From positions 1-64,000 of IMG/VR virus record IMGVR_UViG_3300046170_000378: a stretch of 64,000 bases of DNA. One strand, written 5' to 3'. A program made the translations under genes and the position numbers. Shown piece after piece: positions 7,385 through 38,351 of the stretch; positions within the stretch are counted from its first letter, which is position 1, and every line of letters begins with the position of its first letter. A model generated the notes under the pieces. That model saw only the letters and a program-made list of their open reading frames with translations. It was not told the origin of the DNA and searched no databases.

Positions 7385-7781
7385 ATGAAACTAGCACTAA
7401 TAGCACACGATGGTAAAAAGGCAGATATGGTTGCCTTTGTAATGAAAAGAATGGATTTCTTTAAAAGAGATCATGTTGAATTGGTAGGAACTGGAACTAC
7501 AGGAACCATGATCATGCATGCTGGCTTAGAAGTCGAGTTAGTAGCAAGTGGACCAATGGGAGGCGATGCTGAAATTCGGAGCTATGGTTACTCGTGGAGA
7601 AATTGACGGAGTTGTCTTCTTTAGAGATCCACTAGACAAACACCCACATGATGTTGATATTTCTATGTTGATGAGACTATGTGATGTGCACGAAATTCCA
7701 CTAGCAACAAATTATAAGTCTGCACACATCTTAGTAAAATACTTTTCAAACAAACCTCATCAAGTAACAGATAATGTATAA
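7385..7781 (+). CDS. mgsA: Methylglyoxal synthase (frameshift near 7577)
   Basis: LALIAHDGKK, GTGTTG, SGPMGGDAEI, FFRDPL..HPHDVDI..LMRLCDVH.IPLATN. Confidence 0.9.
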
Positions 7782-8678: not shown

Positions 8679-9608
8679 ATGAGTAGCATAGAAGAACAAT
8701 ATCGTGGACTGTTAGGTTCGCTTTTGCACAATTCAACACCCAAAGACGATCGCACAGGAACTGGAACACTATCTATATTTGGCAGACAAATAAGACACGA
8801 TATGAAACAGGGGTTTCCTTTATTAACTACAAAGAAAATAGCTGTCAAAACTATGATGACAGAATTAAAGTGGTTCTTAAGAGGAGATACTAACATTAAA
8901 TATTTGGTAGACAATGGCTGTAATATTTGGAATGGCGATGCATATAAACGCTTTACCTATTATACTGACGAAAGCACGTCTATGGAGAGATTCATAGAAT
9001 TAATTAAAACTGACGATGAGTTTGCTGAAAAGTGGGGTGAATTAGGTCCTATATATGGTAAACAATGGAGAAGATGGAAAGGCGATACTTGGGTGGAAGG
9101 AAATACTGATGGAACTGAGGGATTTTATCTTCAATCTGAAACGATTGACCAAATCCAAAACCTAATCAATGACCTTAAAACAAACCCAGATTCTAGACGA
9201 TTGATGGTATCGGCGTGGAATGTTGGAGATTTACCAACTATGACTTTGCCACCTTGTCACTATGGATTTCAGTGTTACGTAAGAGATGGTAAATATCTTT
9301 CATTAATGTGGAACCAAAGATCTGTAGATACTTTCTTAGGTCTTCCATTTAATATTGCAAGTTATGCGGCATTACTTTGTTTGATCGCAGAAGAAGTCGA
9401 TATGATTCCAGATCAATTGATTGGAAACTTAGGCGATGTGCACTTATATTCTAATCATGTAGATCAAGCAATGGAACAGATTTCTAGAGAGATCTATGAT
9501 TTGCCTACAGTTTCATTTAAGAATGTAAACATGCTGGATGGTGAATTTGATTATGAGGTACACAACTATAAGCACCACCCCAGAATTTCGGCACCTTTGT
9601 CAAATTAA
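8679..9608 (+). CDS. thyA: Thymidylate synthase
   Basis: DRTGTGT, FPLLTTKK, LGPIYGKQWR, LPPCH, QRSVDTFLGLPFNIASY. Confidence 0.95.
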   Translation: MSSIEEQYRGLLGSLLHNSTPKDDRTGTGTLSIFGRQIRHDMKQGFPLLTTKKIAVKTMMTELKWFLRGDTNIKYLVDNGCNIWNGDAYKRFTYYTDESTSMERFIELIKTDDEFAEKWGELGPIYGKQWRRWKGDTWVEGNTDGTEGFYLQSETIDQIQNLINDLKTNPDSRRLMVSAWNVGDLPTMTLPPCHYGFQCYVRDGKYLSLMWNQRSVDTFLGLPFNIASYAALLCLIAEEVDMIPDQLIGNLGDVHLYSNHVDQAMEQISREIYDLPTVSFKNVNMLDGEFDYEVHNYKHHPRISAPLSN

Positions 9609-10841: not shown

Positions 10842-12855
10842 ATGTCATTAGCAGCAGACGGTTACGAAAACGAAAAAGGAAGACGAGGTAGCAAGAAAAA
10901 GGCTACTCCGTTTTTAGATGAGTTCGGAGAAGATTTAACTCAATTAGCAGCGGAAGGCAAATTAGACCCCATTATCGGCAGAGATAAAGAGATCTATAGA
11001 ATTTGTCAAATCCTTGCACGTAGAAAGAAAAACAATCCTATTATTTTAGGAGACCCGGGCGTCGGTAAAACCGCAATCGTTGAAGCTATAGCTCAGCGCA
11101 TTGTGAATAAGAAAGTTGCACGTGTGCTTCTTAACAAAAGACTAATCTCTATCAACATGACAACCATTGTTGCAGGAACAAAGTATAGAGGAGAGTTTGA
11201 GGAGAGAATGAAAAATATAGTAGATGAATTAAAGGGTGCAGACAATGTAATTGTTTTTATCGACGAGATTCATACAATTGTTGGTGCAGGTGGAGTTAGC
11301 GGAGCATTAGACGCATCTAATATTCTCAAGCCAGCGCTAGCACGAGGACAAGTACAATGTATTGGTGCAACCACAACTGATGAGTACAGAGAAAACATTG
11401 AAGATGATGGCGCACTAACACGTAGATTCCAAGAAATCTTTATTGATGCTCCTTCGGTTCAAGACACCATTGAGATTCTAAATAGAATAAAAGGTAATTA
11501 TGAAGAGCATCACTCAGTGATATATGAAGACGATGCAGTTGAAGCTTGCGCCAAATTAAGTGAACGTTATATCAAACAACGTGAGCTACCAGACAAAGCG
11601 ATAGATCTTTTGGATGAGGCTGGTGCGAGAACACATTTACTAGAAGTTAAAATTCCAGCTAAAATTAAAAACCTTGAAAAAGAGTTAGAGATTGTTAAGC
11701 TAGAAAAGAAAATGGCAGTGGAAGAACAAGATTATGAAAAAGCTGCTAGTCACAGAGACGGTCAAATTTCATTAGAAAGTTTGATCCAAAAAGAAACTGA
11801 AAAATGGGAGTCTTCTCTAAAATCTAAAAAGAGAGCGGTAACATTTAATGATATTGCAGAAACGGTTTCAATGCAAACAGGTATTCCTATCAATAAGCTA
11901 GGTACTGATGATCTTAAGATGATCAAAAATATGGCTAAAGAAATTAAAGCGAATATCATTGGACAAGATGATGCAGTTGAGGCTTTAGCACAAGTAATTA
12001 AAAGATCAAGAACTGGAGTTGCTAGTCATAGTAAACCAAGTGGATCATTCATGTTTTTAGGACCAACTGGTGTCGGTAAAACAGAAACAGTAAAAGCGTT
12101 ATCTGAATACTTGTTCGGAGACTCTGACTCTATGATCAGAATTGACATGTCTGAATATATGGAAAAGTTTACAGTTAGTAGATTAACTGGAGCGCCTCCG
12201 GGATATGTTGGACACGAAGATGGTGGTCAGTTAACTGAAGCTGTGAGACGCAAGCCATATTCTGTAGTTCTATTCGACGAGATTGAGAAAGCTCATCCTG
12301 ACGTATTTAATACATTACTACAAGTGCTTGACGAAGGTAGATTAACAGACTCTAACGGGACGTACAGTAGATTTTACGAACACAGTAATTGTAATGACGT
12401 CAAACGTTGGTGCTAGAAAGGTATCTGACTTTGGAACTGGTATTGGATTTGCTAGTGAGTCTAATGTTGCCCAAGAGAAAGCCAAAAAAGAAGCAATCAT
12501 TAAAAAGGAATTAAAAAATAAATTTAGTCCTGAATTTTTGAATAGGCTTGATGATTTAATCTTATTTGATCAACTAAAACAAGAGCACGTAATTAAGATC
12601 GTTACTTTAGAGCTTAATAAGTTTATAGAAAGAATGGAAGATGAAGGTTACGCGTTTAAGTTTACAAACACAGCGAAAGAATTCTTAGCTAAAGAAGGTT
12701 ACGATCCAAAGTTCGGCGCAAGGCCAGTTAAGAGGGCTATTCAAAAATATGTAGAAGATTTAGTAGCTGATTTAATTTTAGACGGATTAAAAAAGTCAGA
12801 AAAAGCTATAACTATAACAAAAGATAAGTCAGAGGATAAACTAATTGTAAGATAG
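10842..12855 (+). CDS. clpC: ClpC-type Hsp100 ATPase lacking the N-domain (frameshift near 12358)
   Basis: [33 protein letters not shown]-like M-domain [35 protein letters not shown], ClpP-docking loop [14 protein letters not shown]. Confidence 0.9.
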
Positions 12856-16127: not shown

Positions 16128-18951
16128 ATGCCACAAGCTTCAAATCAAGACATTATTGTAGTTTTACCTGAAATTAGAAGAATTATTAGAGGACAAGCTC
16201 AGAGCTTTAACTTTATAATCTATAAAAATAACATAGGTAATCAACTTAATATTAATAATGCGGTTGAGGTTATTGCAGAAATAAGCGACCAAAGCTTAAA
16301 TGTAGTAAAAACCTTTAAAAAATCTGACGGTACATTAACATACGGTCAACCAAACTCAGATGTTCAAGGAGAAGTAGTAGTATCACTGACTGCTGAAGAA
16401 TCAGCATCTCTTGTACTTTCTGACAATAACATTCAAGGAGAACTTTATGTTCGATTTATTGTACAACAAAATATTAATCAAGTCGTTGTACCTAAAGTTA
16501 AGACAGCTAATATATTCGATGCTGGACAAAACGTAGGAGATGGTATTGTTGCAAGTAGATTTACTTTGCCTGCACCTGTATATTCTATAAAATCTTTCAA
16601 TATTGCAGATAGTGTTTCTCATGGAGAGATGGTTATTAATTCTGCAGACCCTATGAGTATCACTAAAGTTAAGTTTAGTGTAACTGACGATAAGGGTTAT
16701 AGAAATGGTTTTATTGAAGGTGTTTTAGAAGATAGGTTTGATACAGATGGAACCAGCGCTTCGATATATTTGACCAACGTATACAATAATAGTGAATACA
16801 CGCTATTAAAGGTTGTAAGTTGGGGAAGAATAGATCAAAATACAGCAGATGCTGGAAACACTAGATAACAGAGATATTCATGACGCCATAGAATTAGGTT
16901 GTTCAATGGGAAGATAATTCAAAAATAGCAACAAACGATATTGCACTTGAAATAGGTGACAACATCGGTCTTTTTGCAGAAGCGTATACTAAACCAGGCA
17001 CACAAGTAAGTGTAGATGGACAAACGTATGAAGACATTACAGCCATTGAATGGCAAGGTGGTATTGCAGCATCTGATCTTGGAGATGGGTCTCTTAGACT
17101 TACTATAGCAGGTGGAGCACCTAGTACTTCAGGTACTTCTGGCTCTTCAGGTATTGATGGAGCTACAAGGTGAACAAGGTCCTCGAGGTGAAGCAGGAAG
17201 AGATGGTGTTGATGGAGCACAAGGTGAACAAGGTATCAAAGGACTTGACGGACTTAAAGGCGATGCAGGTACCGACGGAACTTCAGGAATAAGTGGAGCT
17301 GACGGAACTTCAGGTATTGATGGAACTTCAGGTATTGATGGAACTTCAGGTGTTGATGGAACTTCAGGCTATAGTGGCGAAAGAGGTGCAGATGGAACTT
17401 CAGGAAGAGATGGTATTAACGGAACTTCAGGTATTTCAGGTGTTGACGGAACTTCAGGATTAGACGGAACTTCAGGAACAAATGGTTCTTCTGGCTCTTC
17501 TGGTATTTCAGGCGCTGATGGCACTTCTGGTGTTGACGGAACTTCAGGAAGAGACGGCGAAAGAGGACTTCAAGGTGAACAAGGTATTAAAGGACTTGAC
17601 GGCATTCAAGGTATCCAAGGTGAAGCTGGAACTTCAGGAACAAATGGAACATCTGGTGTTGACGGTGCTAAAGGCGATCAAGGTGATCAAGGAATTCAAG
17701 GTGAAGTTGGACCTAAAGGTGACAAAGGTGACCAAGGTTTAACAGGTCAGACTGGACTAGTTGGACCAAAGGGTGACAAAGGGTGATCAAGGTGATCAAG
17801 GCCTTAAAGGTGATCAAGGAATTCAAGGTGAAGTTGGACCTCAAGGAATTAAAGGAGATAATGGTACTTCTGGTACTAATGGATCTTCGGGTATTAATGG
17901 TGCCTAAGGGTGACAATGGTTCTTCTGGAACTGATGGAACTTCAGGGTTCTAATGGATCAAGCGGTACTAATGGTACTAACGGATCTTCAGGTATTAATG
18001 GTGCCAAAGGTGATCAAGGTGTTAAGGGTGAAGATGGATCTTCGGGAGTTAATGGAAACAATGGTACTTCGGGTACTAATGGTACTTCAGGTATTAATGG
18101 AGTTTCTAATATTCCTGGACCTAAGGGTGATAAGGGTGACAAAGGTGATCAAGGTGATCCAGGTAATGATGGAGTTTCTAATATTCCTGGACCTAAGGGT
18201 GATCAAGGTGATCAAGGACCTAAAGGGTGACAAAGGTGATCAAGGTGATCAAGGACTTCAAGGTGATCAAGGTGATCAAGGTATTCAAGGAGCCTAAGGG
18301 TGATCAAGGTGATCAAGGACTTCAAGGTAATAACGGACCTAAGGGTGACAAAGGTGATCAAGGTATTCAAGGTATTCAAGGTCTCAAGGGTGATACTGGT
18401 AACGACGGTGTAGGAATTCCTGCCGGAGGCGTAGATGGACAAGCACTTATAAAATCCGGAGGTACAGATTATTCTGTAACTTGGGGAGATGCTATCGGTT
18501 CAGGTACTAAAAAATATTTAGCATATGTTACGTTTACTGCAGCAGAGGCGATTAACACAATTACAATGGTTGATCCTAATAGGTGACGGTAGATTTGCAA
18601 CCTGGAGGTGTAACCACTTCTACTTCTATTGGTGGCAATGGAGAAAAGTTTGCTGAGTTTACATTTGCTAACGAAGATGGAGCTCCTCTTACAATCACAG
18701 CATTAGCGGCTAACATGATTACAAATGAATATAAAATTACAAGCCTCAACGGAGGTGGAGATGACAAACAATATATACTGTCTAATGTAACTATGTCTAG
18801 CCCTAATAACAACAACGATTATGTTGGTGATGTTTGGACGGCATTCTCAAATAATAAAGTTAAATTAGATTTAACCAAATCAAATATAGATTATGTTAGA
18901 AAGGGTTTCCCAACAAAAGAGGGTCATGCTTATATCATATTCACATTTTAA
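16128..18951 (+). CDS. Structural protein with a central Gly-X-Y collagen-like region (about 10 +1 insertions)
   Basis: Globular N-terminus, then (GTSGID/GPKGDKGDQ)n triplets spread over ORF fragments 17112-18586, then a C-terminal domain shared with the next gene. Confidence 0.65.
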
Positions 18952-18972
18952 TAAACAATAAGATAGTAAAAA

Positions 18973-19942
18973 ATGGCTTACATTAAACCCGATAAAACAC
19001 ACAACCCAGGCGGTTCATTTCCGTATACTAACTTTATAGTACCAAATGATGGCGACTCAATCGTTTGGTATGGCTCATTCATTTAATATGATCGGTGCTA
19101 TAACAGAAATGCCTACAATTGAAGATAGGAATAATATTCCAGTTAACCAATATTCTTCAACTAACACTGGTTTCACTGACAACATGGATGGCATCTCTTC
19201 TGGTAGAAGAAGGATAGGTATGTTAGTATACGTGCTTGAAACACAAAAACATTACCAATTATTACCTAAGGGTTATTTTGGTAATGATGGCGATGGAACA
19301 TTAGAACAGTTTAACTCTTTACCAGAATGGGAAAGAGCAAGATTATTGCATCCAGAATCCGAAGGCATTAAGACAGATCAAAGTTCTTTTGTACCGGGTC
19401 AAGGTTTAGTTTACACAGAAATGCCTATTACTGGAGTAGCTGCTGATTGTTGGGTAGAAATTGACATGCTCAGTTCAGGTGGAATCACACGCCCAAGTGT
19501 TACAAAATATTTAGCATACATTACATTCTCTGTAGCGGAAGAAGTTGAATCAATTACTATGGTTGATCCAGCAGGAGATAATAAATACTCAACAAAAAAT
19601 GTGTCGGCATCGACTTCTATTGGCGGTAATGGAGAAAAGTTTGCAGAATTCTCATTTGGTGATGAAGCTGCAGCACCTAGCTCTATTGTTATCTTAGCAT
19701 CTAATATGATTACTAGTGAATATAAAATCACTAGTTTAAATGGCGGAGGTGACGATAAACAATATGTAATAGCCAATGCATCGATGACACAAACTGAGGG
19801 TACAGATAAATATACGAGTGATATTTTTACATCGTTCGCAAACGCAACTATAAAATTAGATTTAACCAAATCAAATATAGATTATGTTAGACGTGGCTTT
19901 CCAACTAAAGAGGCACATGCATATATCATATTCACATTTTAA
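18973..19942 (+). CDS. Putative structural protein (frameshift near 19060); C-terminal domain paralogous to the previous gene
   Basis: Starts MAYIKPDKTHNPGG. Both genes end with TK(K)YLAY.TF...STSIGGNGEKFAEF...GFPTKE.HAYIIFTF. Confidence 0.65.
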
Positions 19943-31828: not shown

Positions 31829-34800
31829 ATGCCTAGAAGATCACTAAAAAGTATTGCCAATATGGTTGCAGCTATGAAGTTTGGCAGAAATGCAACAAAT
31901 ATAGCTAACGCAAAAAACGCAAAAATAGGTTTAAATAATCCTGGTTTTAAAGATGCGCATAAACCAAGTGCTTATTCTGCTTCGCAAGAATACACTGATT
32001 TATACACACTTGGCCCAATAATAGACGACATCTTAGATGCAATTCATGCTCTTGAAGATGAATCTGCCGGAATAGGTGAGTATTTACATGATCACTTTGG
32101 ATCCGAAGAAGATAAGATTCAAATACCTGCAGATTTAAGAGTAGAAATAGGAGGCGCTTTTGTTCAAGCTCTATATGAAAACTCAGACAATATAATTATA
32201 GGTGCAGACGTCTTTTTGCCTAATTCAGGTATAGTTAATTTTCAAATAACTGGAAATAATACATTACAAGTAGGTGGAGTACCAATCATTAACGCAAGTG
32301 GAGAATGGATTGGACCTTCTACGGGACTTAAGGGCCAGAAAGGTCAGAGAGGTGTAGCTGGAACTTCAGGAACTGATGGTACATCAGGATCTTCAGGTTC
32401 AAGTGGATCTTCGGGTACTGACGGATCTTCAGGTACTAATGGAACAAATGGATCTTCAGGTACTGACGGATCTTCAGGTACTAATGGAACTAGTGGTGTT
32501 GACGGAGCTAAAGGTCAAAAAGGACAGACAGGCCAAAAAGGACAAAAGGGTCAAACCGGTGCGGCAGGAACTAGTGGTACTAATGGAACCGATGGAACTA
32601 GCGGAATTAAAGGCCAAAAGGGTCAAAAAGGACAAACAGGTTCAACAGGTGCCAAGGGTAACACAGGTAACTTCGGTGGAGCTAGTTTTGATTACACGCA
32701 TGATTCTTCTACAAATGCAATGTCTGACCCAGGAAGAGGTAGAGTTAGAACAAACAGCAATACAATGTCGAGCGTTAGCTCATTAGCAATAGACGCTGAA
32801 GACGATTTTGGTAATGATATTAGTAATTTCTTAACTACTGTAGATGCATCAACATCTGCAGTTAAAGGTTTTGTAAGATTTGCAGAAAAGACAAATACTA
32901 CTTCATTTGTAACATATGCAATATATGATTTAATAAACAGATCAGGTTGGTGGGAATTAAGTGTCGATATGACTGCAACATCTGCACCAACTATTCCATT
33001 TGCAAACGGAGCAGACATTATAATGTCCTTTGTTGTAACTGGTAATGTGGGTGATAAAGGTCAAAAAGGAGCGTCAGGTGTTGATGGAATCTCTGGAACA
33101 TCTGGTCAAGACGGAACATCTGGAACTGATGGTACATCAGGATCTAGTGGATCAAGCGGTTCTTCTGGAACCGATGGATCTTCAGGTACTAATGGTACTA
33201 ATGGATCTTCAGGTTCATCTGGTTCAAGCGGAACTTCAGGTTCATCTGGTTCAAGCGGTACTAATGGTACTAATGGATCTTCGGGTTCTTCAGGATCTAG
33301 TGGATCTTCAGGTTCTTCAGGATCTAGTGGTTATCAAGGCGCAAAAAGTGGTGAATATGGAGATCCAAATAGTGTAAATCTACTTGGAGAATTTAACGGC
33401 CAATTATACTTTGATGGAAACGGTTTTGTTTGGACATGGATCTCAGCAGAAGGCGCTTGGATAAAGGTAAATAATTTAACTGGTCAAAAAGGACAAAAAG
33501 GGCAAACTGGAGCCCAAGGTATTAAAGGTGTTACTGGACCAAAAGGTAATGCTGGTTCTTCTGGAACCGATGGATCAAGTGGATCAAGTGGTTCTTCAGG
33601 ATCGAGCGGAAGAAATGGAACTAGTGGAGTTAACGGTGCTAAAGGACAAACTGGGGCACAAGGTGCTCAAGGTGCACAAGGACCACAGGGTGCTCAAGGT
33701 GTACAAGGTATTAAAGGTCAGAAAGGTCAAAAAGGTCAAACAGGAGCTCAAGGTCCTCAGGGACAAAAAGGTCAAACAGGTTCTCAAGGTTTTCAAGGAC
33801 ATGGTTATACAAAAGCTGCCTTAGATGGTGTAGATTTAGTATTAACACACACGTTAGATGGAGACATTAATGTCGGTAGAGTTTACGGAAATCAAGGTGC
33901 TCAAGGTGCTCAAGGTCAGAAAGGTCAGAAAGGTCAAACTGGTGGTCAAGGTGGTCAAGGTGCTCAAGGTATTAAAGGTGTTACTGGGCCGACCGGACCG
34001 CAAGGTGCTACTGGACCACAGGGTATTAAAGGTGTTACTGGGCCGACCGGACCGCAAGGTGCTACTGGACCACAGGGTATTAAAGGTGCTACTGGTGCTA
34101 AAGGTGTTACTGGACCTAAAGGAAACACCGGTGCTCAAGGACCTACCGGACCACAGGGACCTCAAGGTCATGGCGTTAAAACAGCCTACTTATCAGGCAC
34201 TGATTTAATTATAGATCATACATTAGAAGGTTTAATAAATGTCGGTAGAGTTTATGGAAATCAAGGTGCTAAAGGTCAGAAAGGACAAACCGGTGGCCAA
34301 GGTGGCCAAGGTGCACAAGGTATTAAAGGTGTTACTGGACCGACCGGACCTCAAGGGCCAACAGGTGCACAAGGTGCACAAGGTATAAAAGGTCAGAAAG
34401 GTCAGAAAGGTCAAACTGGAAATACTGGACCTAAAGGAAGTACAGGTGCTCAAGGACCACAGGGTCATGGCTATACAAGAGCCACTCTAGTTGGTGCAAA
34501 TTTAGTATTAACACATACACTAGACGGAGATCTTGATATTGGTAGAGTTTACGGAAATCAAGGTGCTCAAGGACCAACAGGTGCACAAGGTGCTCAAGGA
34601 CCAACAGGTGCTGGCGGTGCTAAGGGACAAAAAGGTCAAAAAGGACAAACCGGTGCTCAAGGTGGTGGAGGTGCTCAAGGAGCTAAAGGTGCAACTGGGC
34701 CAACCGGACCAAAGGGTGCTATTGGTGTTACAGGTGCTCAAGGTCCAACTGGAGCTAAGGGTCAAAAAGGACAAACTGGTGCTCAAGGTGGACAAGGTGC

Positions 34801-35059
34801 TCAAGGTATTAAAGGTGCAACTGGGCCGACAGGACCAAAGGGTTCTACCGGGCCAACTGGGCCGCAAGGTGCAACCGGACCACAAGGTGCAACCGGACCA
34901 ACACTAAACGTTTCCAATAATTCTAACAATAGAATTATCACGGCAACTGGTGGATCTACAGTAAATGCTGAGTCTGCATTAACATTCGATGGAACATATT
35001 TAAATATTAACGGAGCTGGAATATCACACGATGGCACCGTAATGAGATTTACAGTATAA
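31829..35059 (+). CDS. Collagen-like fibre protein (1076 aa), possibly the proximal long-tail-fibre (gp34-position) subunit
   Basis: Long GQK/GAQ/GPT/GIK triplet runs interrupted by repeated HTL(D/E)G..VGRVYG modules; directly precedes the gp35-like gene. Confidence 0.75.
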
Positions 35060-35083
35060 TAATAAGATAACAAATAACTTAAT

Positions 35084-36984
35084 ATGCAGTTAAATACAGA
35101 AAGAGAAACCAGAGTAAATATCGCAGGTGAAGCCGGAGGTCCATGTTCAGCTACATTGTCTGCATATGGAACATCATATAATTGCTCAGATACAAGTGCT
35201 GGTCACTTTGCTTTAGCCATTAAAGGGCAAGTAAAAGAGTATGCAGCTTCAACTAGGGGCTTGACATTATTAATCATAGATCACAGCTCACTTGAAGTAA
35301 TAACACATACAACACTTGATACATACGGTGACGATCAAGCTAGAATTAAACTGGCGGGTCTTTTAACAAATATAGTCAACGGTGAGTATGGAAATGTTAT
35401 TTTTGCACTCGCATCTCAAGACGCTATAGGTACTAATGCCACTTTGGCAGCTGCATTTAGAGAACTAAGAGCATATCATTGGTTTCAACTTCCAGGTTTA
35501 TCTAACGGTCCAACGCACAGACATCCATACGCTGCAATAGGAACAAGCAACTTAGGTATTATTAAAGAAGCTTTACATTCTAACACAGTAGGTGCAGCAC
35601 CTTCTCAGGTGACTATGAATATTCCAGATGATTGGGATACTATTGGTCACGAGGGCTATGGTCCAGATTTAAATTTTGGATCTAAGTTATCAGAATTTTC
35701 GTACACCGGAACTGGATATAGTTTTAATCATGGACCACATTTAACAGTCGAAAACTCTGGATATAAACACATAAAAGACGGTGAATATGTTAGAATGACT
35801 GGACAGATGAAAATAAGTTTAGAAAGAAAAGAAGCTGGTGGCTATGTGAGATCTTATTTTTGGAGTGCATCTACTACTGATGGATGGATTACATCTGCTA
35901 GTCACGGTAGTTATTCTACAGAATGGGAAAGATTTGAACTTTATTTTAGATGGAATAAATCATCTCAAACGGCGTCTGGTAGCAATAGTGGCGGAGGCGA
36001 ATCTATTTATTTAAGATGGGGACAATATCATTATCCTAGTAGTATTGATCCTGGAACTTCTTATATAAAAGACATTACTATACAAAAATGTGGATTTAAA
36101 CCAAACCAAGATCGCGACATAACTTTAAATTTAACCTAGTGATGCAATAGATGGTAAACAAATAAATGAATCTGTTGGTCCATTTGGAATTACAAATCCA
36201 GATAATTATTGGACCGTATTTCATTCAGAAAGAAATTTAACAGGCCGACCAAATTTAGGTGATTCTAGAATGGGTTCAGGCTTTGATACAAATAATGTAA
36301 AATGGTTTGATAGAGAGTTGACAGATAGATCACAGTACTCTATACACTGAAGGCAAGAATTTTACTGGAGACTCTAACAGATACAACGACATTGGATATG
36401 TAAATATTGACCCTACTAAAATGTACGCAGGTATGATTTGGCATTATTGTCATGAAAAGGGAAATGGTAACACATATCTAGGAACACACACTAGAAATGC
36501 ATCAGGAAGTACCGTACCAACATACGCATATGCAGGAACTAGTAACACAACTAACCCATATTGTATGTACCCTGCGGCATCTAATGTAGAGAAGAATACT
36601 TGGACACTTTGGACATATTTCTTTTTACCACATTGGTTCACTGATCAACAAGGTACAGATTTTTACAATGAAAACTGGTGTTATTGGGCTGGCAATTATG
36701 AAAACGCGAGTGCAGATAATTTATCAAAAACAGCAGGTTCTAGAGGTAGTAATGGCGGTAACATCAGAGTTTCTAGATTTAAAGAATCAGATGCACAGAT
36801 ACATTTAAGGTGGCTAGATTATTACAACACAAATGCTAACCATAAAACATGGTGGGCTTTACCTATGATTATTGAAATAGATCCACTAGATTTAGGAGCA
36901 AATGGTGCAATAGATCCATTTAAATTAATTGAAGATAATACTCAATTTAATAGTCAGTTTGGAAACATAAAAGGAATGAGTTAA
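35084..36984 (+). CDS. ILEI-domain protein resembling the T4 gp35 tail-fibre hinge (two +1 insertions near 36136 and 36345)
   Basis: RGLTLLIID...LDTYGD (ILEI-like), PYAAIGTS, DWDTIGHEGYG; continuous reading restored by removing two bases. Confidence 0.55.
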
Positions 36985-36995
36985 ATATATAGAAT

Positions 36996-37097
36996 ATGAG
37001 CAACGAAGAAAAATATACATGTCAAGTTTGTGGAAGCGACTCTAGTGGTTGTACTTCTGATCAATGCTTACCGACATTAAATCAAAACTTAGAATAA
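36996..37097 (+). CDS. 33-aa Cys-rich peptide (not in the ORF track)
   Basis: MSNEEKYTCQVCGSDSSGCTSDQCLPTLNQNLE*; fills the gap between two fibre genes; AATATATA 4 nt before the ATG. Confidence 0.5.
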   Translation: MSNEEKYTCQVCGSDSSGCTSDQCLPTLNQNLE

Positions 37098-37100
37098 GAA

Positions 37101-38351
37101 ATGGCAGATTTAAAACAAGGAACAACAGTAGGAGGTAACGAAGTATTACATACCGGAAACTTTATTACAGCCAATTACCCAGGATTTAAAGGTTCTACTG
37201 GAGCCCAAGGTGCTAAAGGTGCTACTGGACCCCAAGGTGCTACAGGACCTAAAGGTTCTACTGGAAACACTGGAGCCCAAGGTGCTAAAGGTGCTACTGG
37301 CCCTCAAGGTGGTACAGGACCACAGGGGATTAAAGGTCAAAAAGGTCAAACTGGTGCTACAGGTGCTATTGGACCGAAGGGTACTACTGGAAATACTGGG
37401 GCACAAGGTGCTAAAGGTGCTACTGGACCGACTGGTGCTACCGGCCCTCAAGGAGCACAAGGTGCTACCGGCCCTCAAGGTGGTGGAGGTGCAACTGGTG
37501 CCAAAGGTCAAAAAGGTCAAAAGGGTGCAACGGGTGCTCAAGGAGCTCAAGGTGTAATTGGACCAAAAGGAAACGTAGGAAGTACAGGACCAACGGGTGC
37601 TCAAGGTGCTAAAGGTCAGAAAGGACAAACAGGTGCTCAAGGTGGCGGTGGTGCTAAAGGTGCTACTGGACCCACTGGACCTACCGGACCTAAAGGAAGT
37701 ACAGGCGCTCAAGGGCCACAAGGTCATGGCGTTAAAACAGCCTACTTATCAGGTGTTGATTTAATTATAGACCACACATTAGATGGTTTAATAAATGTTG
37801 GTAGAGTTTACGGTGCTCAAGGTGCTAAAGGTCAGAAAGGACAAACAGGTGCTCAAGGTGGCGGTGGTGCCACTGGAGCTAAAGGTCAGAAAGGACAAAC
37901 AGGTGCCACTGGACCACAAGGTGCTCAAGGTGGTGGAGGTGCTCAAGGCGCTAAAGGCCAGAAAGGTGCACCAGGTGCTACCGGACCGATCGGACCAGAA
38001 GGTAAAACTGGAGCCCAAGGTGCAACAGGTGCTCAAGGTGGAATTGGACCAAAAGGTAATACAGGAAATACCGGTGCCGCTGGAGCTAAAGGTCAAAAAG
38101 GTGCACCAGGTGCTACCGGACCGACTGGACCTAAAGGAAATACTGGTGCTACTGGACCTACCGGTGCTACTGGACCTACCGGTGCTACTGGACCTGCTGG
38201 TCAAGATGGCGGTGGAGGATGTATTGCCCTATTCGTAGACGGTCGAGATTCAAACGCATGTCTTGATTCTGTAAATGTCGATACTAGAGCTGGCGCTATG
38301 CAACTGGTATTTGATAACGGCGATGCTTTCACAGCAATGTTACTAAAATAA
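37101..38351 (+). CDS. Collagen-like fibre protein with a T4 gp36-like N-terminus
   Basis: [21 protein letters not shown], then roughly 100 Gly-X-Y triplets rich in GAK/GQK/GPK/GPT. Confidence 0.75.

Follow-up and report, generated by a model that had tools for sequence, protein, structure and literature searches.

Two collagen-like genes that enclose a third gene, between positions 31,829 and 38,351 of the IMG/VR virus record IMGVR_UViG_3300046170_000378, raise the question of what kind of fibre a marine phage might build from their products. The stretch analysed here (the window) comprises the first 64 kb of this 212,342-bp record, whose completeness is estimated at ~76% by CheckV. In bacteriophage T4, a trimer of gp34 constitutes the proximal half of the long tail fibre; the knee is a gp35 monomer, to which the distal half is bound by its gp36 end (PMC3004832). 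A preliminary description of the window, made from the letters alone, had read the three genes as a T4-like gp34-gp35-gp36 series, in which the beta-structured shafts were replaced by modifiable collagen. Indeed, a collagen gene, a middle gene and a second collagen gene are present where it had placed them (Table 1). Marine cyano- and pelagimyophages are known to carry G-X-Y proteins beside glycosyltransferases in their host-recognition clusters; these reports describe no architecture, and tail fibres could not be assigned (PMC1079782, PMC7029224). Annotating tail fibres is, moreover, notoriously hard in uncultured marine myophages (PMC7029224). In the literature searched we found no report of collagen fibres linked to a gp35/gp36 hinge. 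Here we argue that the products of the region form a long tail fibre with a hinge, in which a T4-type knee joint connects two shafts of collagen-like triple helices, a reading to which we assign a probability of roughly two thirds.

Table 1. Features of the fibre locus and its surroundings (window coordinates, except where a related contig is named; aa, amino acids)
Feature	Position	Strand	Remarks
Collagen-like fibre, 1662 aa	26814..31802	+	Pfam Collagen E 1.5e-93; C-terminal Peptidase_S74 E 1.4e-6
Candidate proximal half-fibre, 1076 aa	31829..35059	+	Pfam Collagen E 1.7e-79
Conserved C-terminal 51 aa of the 1076-aa protein	34904..35056	+	Proposed docking end facing the knee
gp35-like knee connector	35084..36984	+	One 632-aa gene, two artefactual letters left out
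Assembly artefact 1	36135..36137		Window ACCT; other samples ACC or ACT (synonymous Thr)
Assembly artefact 2	36347..36348		Window CACT; other samples CAC or CAT (synonymous His)
Micro-ORF, 33 aa	36996..37097	+	Four invariant Cys; ends 3 nt ahead of the distal gene's ATG
Micro-ORF relatives	L003 11847-11948; L007 3498-3590; L010 7874-7975; L011 7856-7957		
Candidate distal half-fibre, 416 aa	37101..38351	+	Pfam Collagen E 1.5e-38
gp36 N-terminal connector motif, 21 aa	37101..37163	+	Shared with T4 gp36
Variable C-terminal tip of the distal protein	38226..38348	+	Proposed receptor-binding end
Small 2-oxoglutarate (2OG)-Fe(II) oxygenase, 198 aa	38455..39051	+	PF13640 E 3.1e-13
GT4/GT1 glycosyltransferase, 344 aa	39058..40092	+	Glycos_transf_1 E 3.3e-8; Glyco_transf_4 E 1.2e-7
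GT25::lysyl-hydroxylase-like fusion, 431 aa	40085..41380	+	GT25-like 3-210; lysyl-hydroxylase-like 238-427

The gp35 homologue between the collagen-like genes

The middle gene encodes a bona fide homologue of the knee-cap protein gp35, as judged by sequence, profile and fold. The 351-aa N-terminal piece of its product matches phrog_1154, 'long tail fiber protein proximal connector' (expectation value, E, 1.3e-12), a family to which T4 gp35 belongs too (E 7e-170). With this piece as query, tblastn retrieved 73 cultured-phage records, 61 of which cover at least 80% of it; the records listed are annotated as gp35, hinge or tail-fibre connector, apart from a few unnamed ones. Its best sequence matches are gp35 proteins of the RB43/RB16 type (Pseudotevenvirus), RB43-type gp35 reaching E 2e-15 at ~24% identity over ~90% of the query, and the C-terminal piece is best matched by the C-terminal part of KVP40-type gp35 (Schizotequatrovirus; E down to 1e-10). 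Within phrog_16097 the C-terminal piece aligns with positions 733-878 (E 1.2e-8) and T4 gp35 with positions 416-617. This placement and the KVP40 match together indicate that both pieces are colinear with a long gp35.

By direct BLASTP, the window pieces showed no significant match to T4 gp35 (E 0.48), and the open reading frames (ORFs) 35084-36139 and 36421-36984 are without a Pfam match at E 0.01. When a profile of 23 marine homologues was compared with T4 gp35 by hhalign, the probability was 98% (E 2e-13) over 328 columns, which span T4 residues 8-347. Three segments that the preliminary description had named for T4 gp35 (GLHLRVFD, YAAFYTS and EDVGATGF) are all present in that protein, and the profile alignment reproduces the pairings proposed for them: GRGISLAILD, HPYAAIGTS and DMLGAEGYG of the marine profile stand opposite SAGLHLRVFD, VSYAAFYTS and EDVGATGFP of T4. 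The ILEI domain claimed for the middle gene fared less simply. In the window protein the Pfam match stays below threshold (E 0.012, 16.5 bits versus a cut-off of 27, residues 58-153), whereas T4 gp35 passes it (E 1.1e-8, residues 59-127, beginning at the aligned motif) and the fold comparison below supports the assignment. A GG domain of the FAM3/ILEI kind in gp35 has been reported before (PMC10276149).

For structural work the intact 618-aa protein of a relative (P0001; E 6e-17 against RB43 gp35) stands in for that of the window. Its AlphaFold model has a mean predicted local distance difference test score (pLDDT) of 80.3, and the best viral matches found by Foldseek in BFVD are gp35 hinge connectors (E 4e-29 to 6e-14), among them those of phi-pp2 (E 4e-29) and RB16 (E 5.8e-23). 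Several gp35 models of T4 size (~370 aa) match at template modelling (TM) scores of 0.62-0.72, and the connector of Vibrio phage 1.081.O aligns over 95% of P0001. In the PDB, the N-terminal domain matches the stem (GG) domain of POMGnT1 (TM 0.70) and the remainder sandwiches like those of carbohydrate-binding modules (CBM); a PDB sequence search with P0001 found no match, so that there is no solved gp35 for comparison by sequence. The protein thus described has three parts: an N-terminal GG/ILEI domain and a middle beta-sandwich, equivalent to T4 gp35 when taken together, and, C-terminally, a further beta-sandwich common to KVP40-type gp35. At 632 aa the window connector is considerably longer than the 372 aa of T4 gp35.

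As deposited, this gene is broken. In a three-frame translation, 35084-36984 proves to be a single gene that is divided by two +1 shifts, one near 36136 and one at 36348. Both breaks fall exactly on stop codons, ACC-T-AGT (TAG) and CAC-T-GAA (TGA). Because of these stops, programmed frameshifting was considered: the gene might require two programmed +1 shifts or might be a pseudogene, and the immediate stop at each break, next to intact neighbouring ORFs of 5 kb and 3.2 kb, could be taken in this sense. Contigs from four independent seawater runs of four studies (X1, X4, X9, X19) nevertheless all lack one letter per site. At the first site the letter is missing at 36135 (X1, X19) or at 36137 (X4, X9), at full depth, and at the second at 36347 (X1, X4) or at 36348 (X9, X19), so that the other samples read ACC-AGT or ACT-AGT and CAC-GAA or CAT-GAA. 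The window therefore wrote both C/T alleles consecutively, an assembly artefact, and all four allele combinations yield a single stop-free ORF of 632 aa. The gene is, furthermore, intact in all relatives of the locus (614-643 aa). An exhaustive profile search returned 49 relatives of the gp35-like protein, the full-length ones of 578-643 aa, and the best of them, P0001, matches all three pieces of the window gene in colinear order, at its residues 1-349 (52% identity), 352-419 (E 4e-22) and 420-613 (66%, E 6e-94); at the second site P0001 passes from ..YSIH to EGKN.. unbroken. The independent contigs without the extra letters rule out programmed +1 frameshifting or a pseudogene, which we regard as scarcely credible for this gene, and the single corrected gene of the preliminary description stands. 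Elsewhere in this IMG/VR record, genes may be disrupted by doubled alleles in the same way.

Junction motifs and synteny in related loci

The second line of evidence is the start of the distal gene, which had been likened to that of T4 gp36. In the T4 record (L001) this protein begins MADLKVGSTTGGSVIWHQGNF, and 13 of these 21 residues are identical to the start of the 416-aa protein. A query of the 26 N-terminal aa matched 1,372 phage records; in 60 records sampled across these, almost all matches are gene 36 starts, with 57-76% identity over residues 1-21. Similarly, the 30-aa N-terminal piece matches positions 1-21 of phrog_5667 (E 4.2e-5), phrog_1425 (E 2.2e-4), which is T4 gp36's own family, phrog_11011 and phrog_8378. 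In the RB43 record (L012, NC_007023) the motif (MADLKLGTTLGGAAIW..) lies at 7537-7626 in a 29-aa ORF whose frame differs from that of the annotated TTG start of gene 36, which suggests a frame error in that record or a mis-set start of the gene.

The same gene set occurs in six further contigs, two from Tara assemblies (L003, L007) and four from IMG/VR (L008-L011). A search for related loci succeeded with a 6-row alignment; the single 351-aa query gave none, and the 23-row alignment was too diverse. The order is a collagen protein with a conserved C-terminus, an intact gp35-like protein, a micro-ORF of 30-33 aa, and a protein composed of the gp36-type N-terminus, collagen and a variable tip. 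Since L009 stops before the micro-ORF and the distal gene, distal homologues are available from five relatives. In the window and all six relatives the gene for the proximal collagen protein lies directly upstream of the gp35-like gene. The proximal protein ends in the consensus ..NNR[IV]ITATGG..LTF.G....DG.TMRF[TI]V, and the distal protein starts with MADL[KR]QGTT[VI]GGNE[VA]LHTGNF, followed by collagen. This recurrence of gene order and junction motifs makes the arrangement more than a matter of chance.

Conservation is distributed unevenly along these proteins. The gp35-like proteins of the relatives are 42-60% identical to that of the window, the 50 C-terminal aa of the proximal protein 58-82% (in five relatives) and the 27 N-terminal aa of the distal protein 78-93%, and the 40 C-terminal aa of the distal protein, i.e. 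its tip, 2-22%. A joint combined with a receptor-binding tip would be expected to give just this pattern, with conservation at the two ends towards the connector and variability at the far end. The conserved C-terminal 51 aa of the window's proximal protein also align with a 503-aa protein of L003, and distal proteins of the relatives measure 268-463 aa. That of L007 ends in a Peptidase_S74-type chaperone, like RB43 gp36, a long fibre that ends in a chaperone of S74 type. L003 has Pfam matches to CrAss_Ring_1 and CrAss_Ring_2 (17912-19464), which lie downstream of its fibre genes at a distance of a few kb.

Alternatively, the three genes could be mere neighbours: the collagens would form fibres of their own, or whiskers, attached to the tail, the neck or the capsid, the gp35-like protein would be a free-standing receptor protein that binds carbohydrates, and the end motifs common to the loci would be recombination cassettes instead of contacts. 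The lectin-like character of the GG domain and the CBM-like folds would suit such a receptor protein, and collagen-like proteins of no known architecture are common in marine myophage host-recognition clusters (PMC7029224, PMC1079782). Complex prediction with P0001 and three copies of its cognate 60-aa distal N-terminus scored 0.00 with 'no answer', which lends no support to a contact and counts as evidence against neither view. Yet the 212-kb record contains the gp36 motif and the gp35 homologue only once each and side by side, the motif directly after the sole homologue; the motif starts gene 36 in the sampled cultured phages, and in T4 and RB43 it comes just after gene 35. In addition, conservation is far higher at the junction ends than in the hinge protein. 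On these grounds we consider a mere neighbourhood improbable and favour the hinged fibre.

Between connector and distal gene lies the micro-ORF, for which the pattern Y-x-C-x2-C-G-x4-G-C-x4-C-L-x3-N-Q-N can be given. It is found at the same site in each of the five further loci that extend into this interval (L009 ends earlier), and five distinct sequences are available: those of the window, L003 and L008 (identical), L007, L010 and L011. The codons of its Cys residues vary, and differences are distributed over the three codon positions as 102/69/129, so that the second position is the least changed. No match was obtained in Pfam or PHROGs. The product might be an assembly factor that binds Zn or forms disulfides. 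At the 3' end of the micro-ORF the DNA itself is highly conserved too, and this segment may at the same time act as a signal for translation or transcription of the distal gene.

A proposed hinged fibre with collagen shafts

How would these proteins be arranged? The 1076-aa protein contains 205 G-X-Y triplets in 6 runs, which make up 57% of its length and follow a non-collagen N-terminus of 165 aa; the runs are interrupted by a domain of 119 aa, one W-rich insert of 45 aa and three inserts of 27 aa. The 416-aa protein is more strictly collagenous (107 triplets, 77% of its length), with runs of 61 and 46 triplets split by a 27-aa insert, the former being the longest uninterrupted run among the fibres, and with a C-terminal tip of 41 aa. 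The 27-aa insert (..L.G.DL...HTL.G...[VI]GRVY) is thus shared, occurring three times in the former protein and once in the latter. Lys is among the commonest Y residues of both proteins, occupying this position in 45 of the 205 triplets of the proximal protein and in 26 of 107 in the distal one.

We propose that the 1076-aa protein trimerises via its G-X-Y runs to form the proximal half-fibre and presents its conserved 51-aa C-terminal end to the knee, where the 632-aa gp35 homologue would sit like monomeric gp35 in T4. The 416-aa protein would likewise trimerise into the distal half-fibre, dock on the knee by its gp36-type N-terminal 21-27 residues, and expose for receptor binding its C-terminal tip, which is small and evolves fast. 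As it would both dock and bear the tip, a single chain would do the jobs of gp36 and gp37. The 33-aa peptide with its four Cys may aid assembly. Trimer formation in this scheme is suggested by the collagen repeats only.

The likeness to T4 is one of order: genes 34-35-36-37-38 present proximal fibre, knee connector and gp36-motif protein in the same succession. The differences are substantial. The T4 shafts consist of beta-structured beads and those of the window of collagen G-X-Y repeats; the window is without the C-terminal domains of gp34, the body recognised by PF03903, gp37 and gp38, and it has the Cys micro-gene in addition. Indeed, tblastn with T4 gp37 and gp38 over the 212-kb record (~76% complete) found none, and enzyme genes follow directly downstream. 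The gp35 proteins of the RB43 and KVP40 types differ likewise: identity amounts to only 23-29%, none of their partner fibres is collagen-like, and gp37 and gp38 are kept.

Several observations weigh against the hinged fibre. The Gp34_trimer and Gp34_2nd domains are absent from the 1076-aa protein, for which Pfam gives Collagen alone; BLASTP of this protein with gp34 of T4 and of RB43 was not significant, tblastn with T4 gp34 over the 212-kb record found none, and no feature for baseplate attachment was identified. The C-terminal 59 aa of the protein gave nothing significant in cultured phages (matches at E 0.6 only), and the non-collagen pieces nothing significant in PHROGs, apart from one weak match of the 131-aa internal domain to phrog_35140, of unknown function (E 6e-4). 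Only its position and its conserved C-terminus suggest a gp34 role. The distal protein, in turn, is tied to gp36 by 21 residues only: PF03903 (Phage_T4_gp36) is absent from it and from the whole 212-kb record at E up to 10, with T4 gp36 itself, as a control, scoring E 9.6e-53. Of the gp34-gp35-gp36 order first proposed, the gp35 homologue, the gp36-type start and the succession as in T4 and RB43 hold, and gp34 features were not detected. The contacts among the three fibre proteins, finally, we infer by analogy with T4; the stoichiometry, the end that sits at the baseplate and the modification of the collagen are inferences as well, while homologies, synteny, the distribution of conservation and the unbroken reading frame are shown.

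A further objection comes from the lineage of the phage. Its major capsid protein, encoded outside the window (record G000:C1:149982-151148), is of the gp23 type (PF07068, Gp23, E 3e-46), and its closest relatives lie elsewhere than in Straboviridae: the nearest capsid proteins are those of the uncultured 'huge phages' LR756500 (50.7% identity) and LR745206, followed by the Lak phages at ~40%. As far as the capsid sequence tells, the phage stands outside the T4-like phages proper. As the lineage is distant from Straboviridae, T4 assembly rules may not transfer to it. The huge phages with the nearest capsid proteins have genomes of 462 and 635 kb, and the source genome of the present record may be much larger than 212 kb.

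A different arrangement of the same parts is also conceivable, in which the gp35-like protein acts as an adaptor by which the 416-aa fibril is attached, laterally as a branch or terminally as an appendage, to the 1076-aa fibre or to the 1662-aa fibre encoded upstream, in parallel to branched fibre systems. Such a role would agree with the 260 aa by which the connector exceeds T4 gp35, including an extra CBM-like sandwich, with the shortness of the distal protein throughout the relatives, and with the presence of several more fibre genes nearby. Among the upstream genes, however, only the one immediately preceding the connector has a C-terminus conserved across relatives, which fits a fixed joint of two partners, and KVP40-type gp35, though part of an ordinary hinged fibre, possesses this extra domain as well. 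We therefore judge a branched arrangement unlikely and retain the hinged fibre with collagen shafts.

Probable modifying enzymes, genomic surroundings and significance

The 1662-aa protein is probably a separate fibre outside the conserved set, its gene being kept upstream in L010 only. Its 237 triplets are almost exclusively G-T/S-S/N/D, its C-terminal Peptidase_S74 domain is a self-cleaving chaperone, and it contains five W-rich inserts (42-52 aa) of the same kind as the single one in the 1076-aa protein.

Downstream of the distal gene follow a small oxygenase, a glycosyltransferase and a fusion protein. The oxygenase matches hydroxylases of the PKHD/PiuC type in the PDB (E 3e-5). In the fusion, the N-terminal half belongs to Pfam GT25 (E 5.4e-22) and matches the human collagen galactosyltransferase COLGALT1 (E 6e-13), and the C-terminal half matches mimivirus L230 (6ax6, E 6.4e-27) and the human lysyl hydroxylase LH3 (E 4e-21), the last three in PDB sequence searches; an HxD...H...R pattern was recognised by eye in the translation of this half. 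Compared with L230, LH3 and COLGALT1, the window protein has the order GT25, then lysyl hydroxylase, in one chain of 431 aa, and by this comparison its substrates would be the nearby G-X-K-rich fibres. Oxygenase, GT4 and hydroxylase domain are syntenic in L010, the closest relative. Homologues of the fusion exist in the cyanophages S-8S55, S-PRM1 and S-CAM9 and in roseophage CRP-6, where they are annotated as hypothetical or as 2OG oxygenase only; no report of phage lysyl hydroxylases was found in the literature searched. Because the fusion, the oxygenase and the GT4 enzyme follow directly, the collagen of the window is plausibly modifiable, as had been supposed at the outset, and the three enzymes would probably hydroxylate and glycosylate the numerous G-X-K triplets of the fibres.

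The region studied is present in 20 seawater-metagenome runs of 19 studies, and the phage is therefore widespread in the sea; megablast of the region against cultured phages gave no match. The T4 late-promoter word TATAAATA is not enriched (5 sites versus 9.7 expected) and does not occur ahead of the fibre genes, and a tRNA scan of the window found none. Elsewhere in the window, thymidylate synthase (8679-9608, plus strand; phrog_160, E 4e-105) and an FtsH-like ATP-dependent protease (10842-12416, plus strand; phrog_4871, E 1e-195) are encoded. The first 6000 positions have a G+C content of 0.40-0.44, versus 0.31-0.38 across most of the remaining window, and, unlike the remainder, carry their ORFs on the minus strand.

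Collagen-like fibre candidates in marine myophages were known already, as was the gp35/gp36 hinge, including its long gp35 in RB43 and KVP40. New is the proposed T4-type knee between collagen shafts in a marine lineage outside Straboviridae, together with a probable set of fibre-modifying genes. More tentatively, and with the greater chance of being mistaken, one may envisage a widespread lineage of large marine phages whose hinged adhesin is made of collagen with animal-type modifications, its triple helices clamped by a lectin-like knee and the four-Cys protein. If so, the GT25::lysyl-hydroxylase fusion would add hydroxylysine-linked sugars, and the clamp, for which no counterpart has been described, would represent a novel type of joint that serves collagen fibres as a portable connector. 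In the literature searched, lysine modification of collagen is reported for animals and giant viruses only, and the hydroxylase/galactosyltransferase fusion makes it testable in phages. A concrete conserved architecture with three short signature motifs will help to find such fibres. The T4 knee, i.e. gp35 plus the N-terminus of gp36, would then be a portable joint that serves outside Straboviridae with a different shaft chemistry, which bears on the evolution of phage fibres and on modular fibre engineering.

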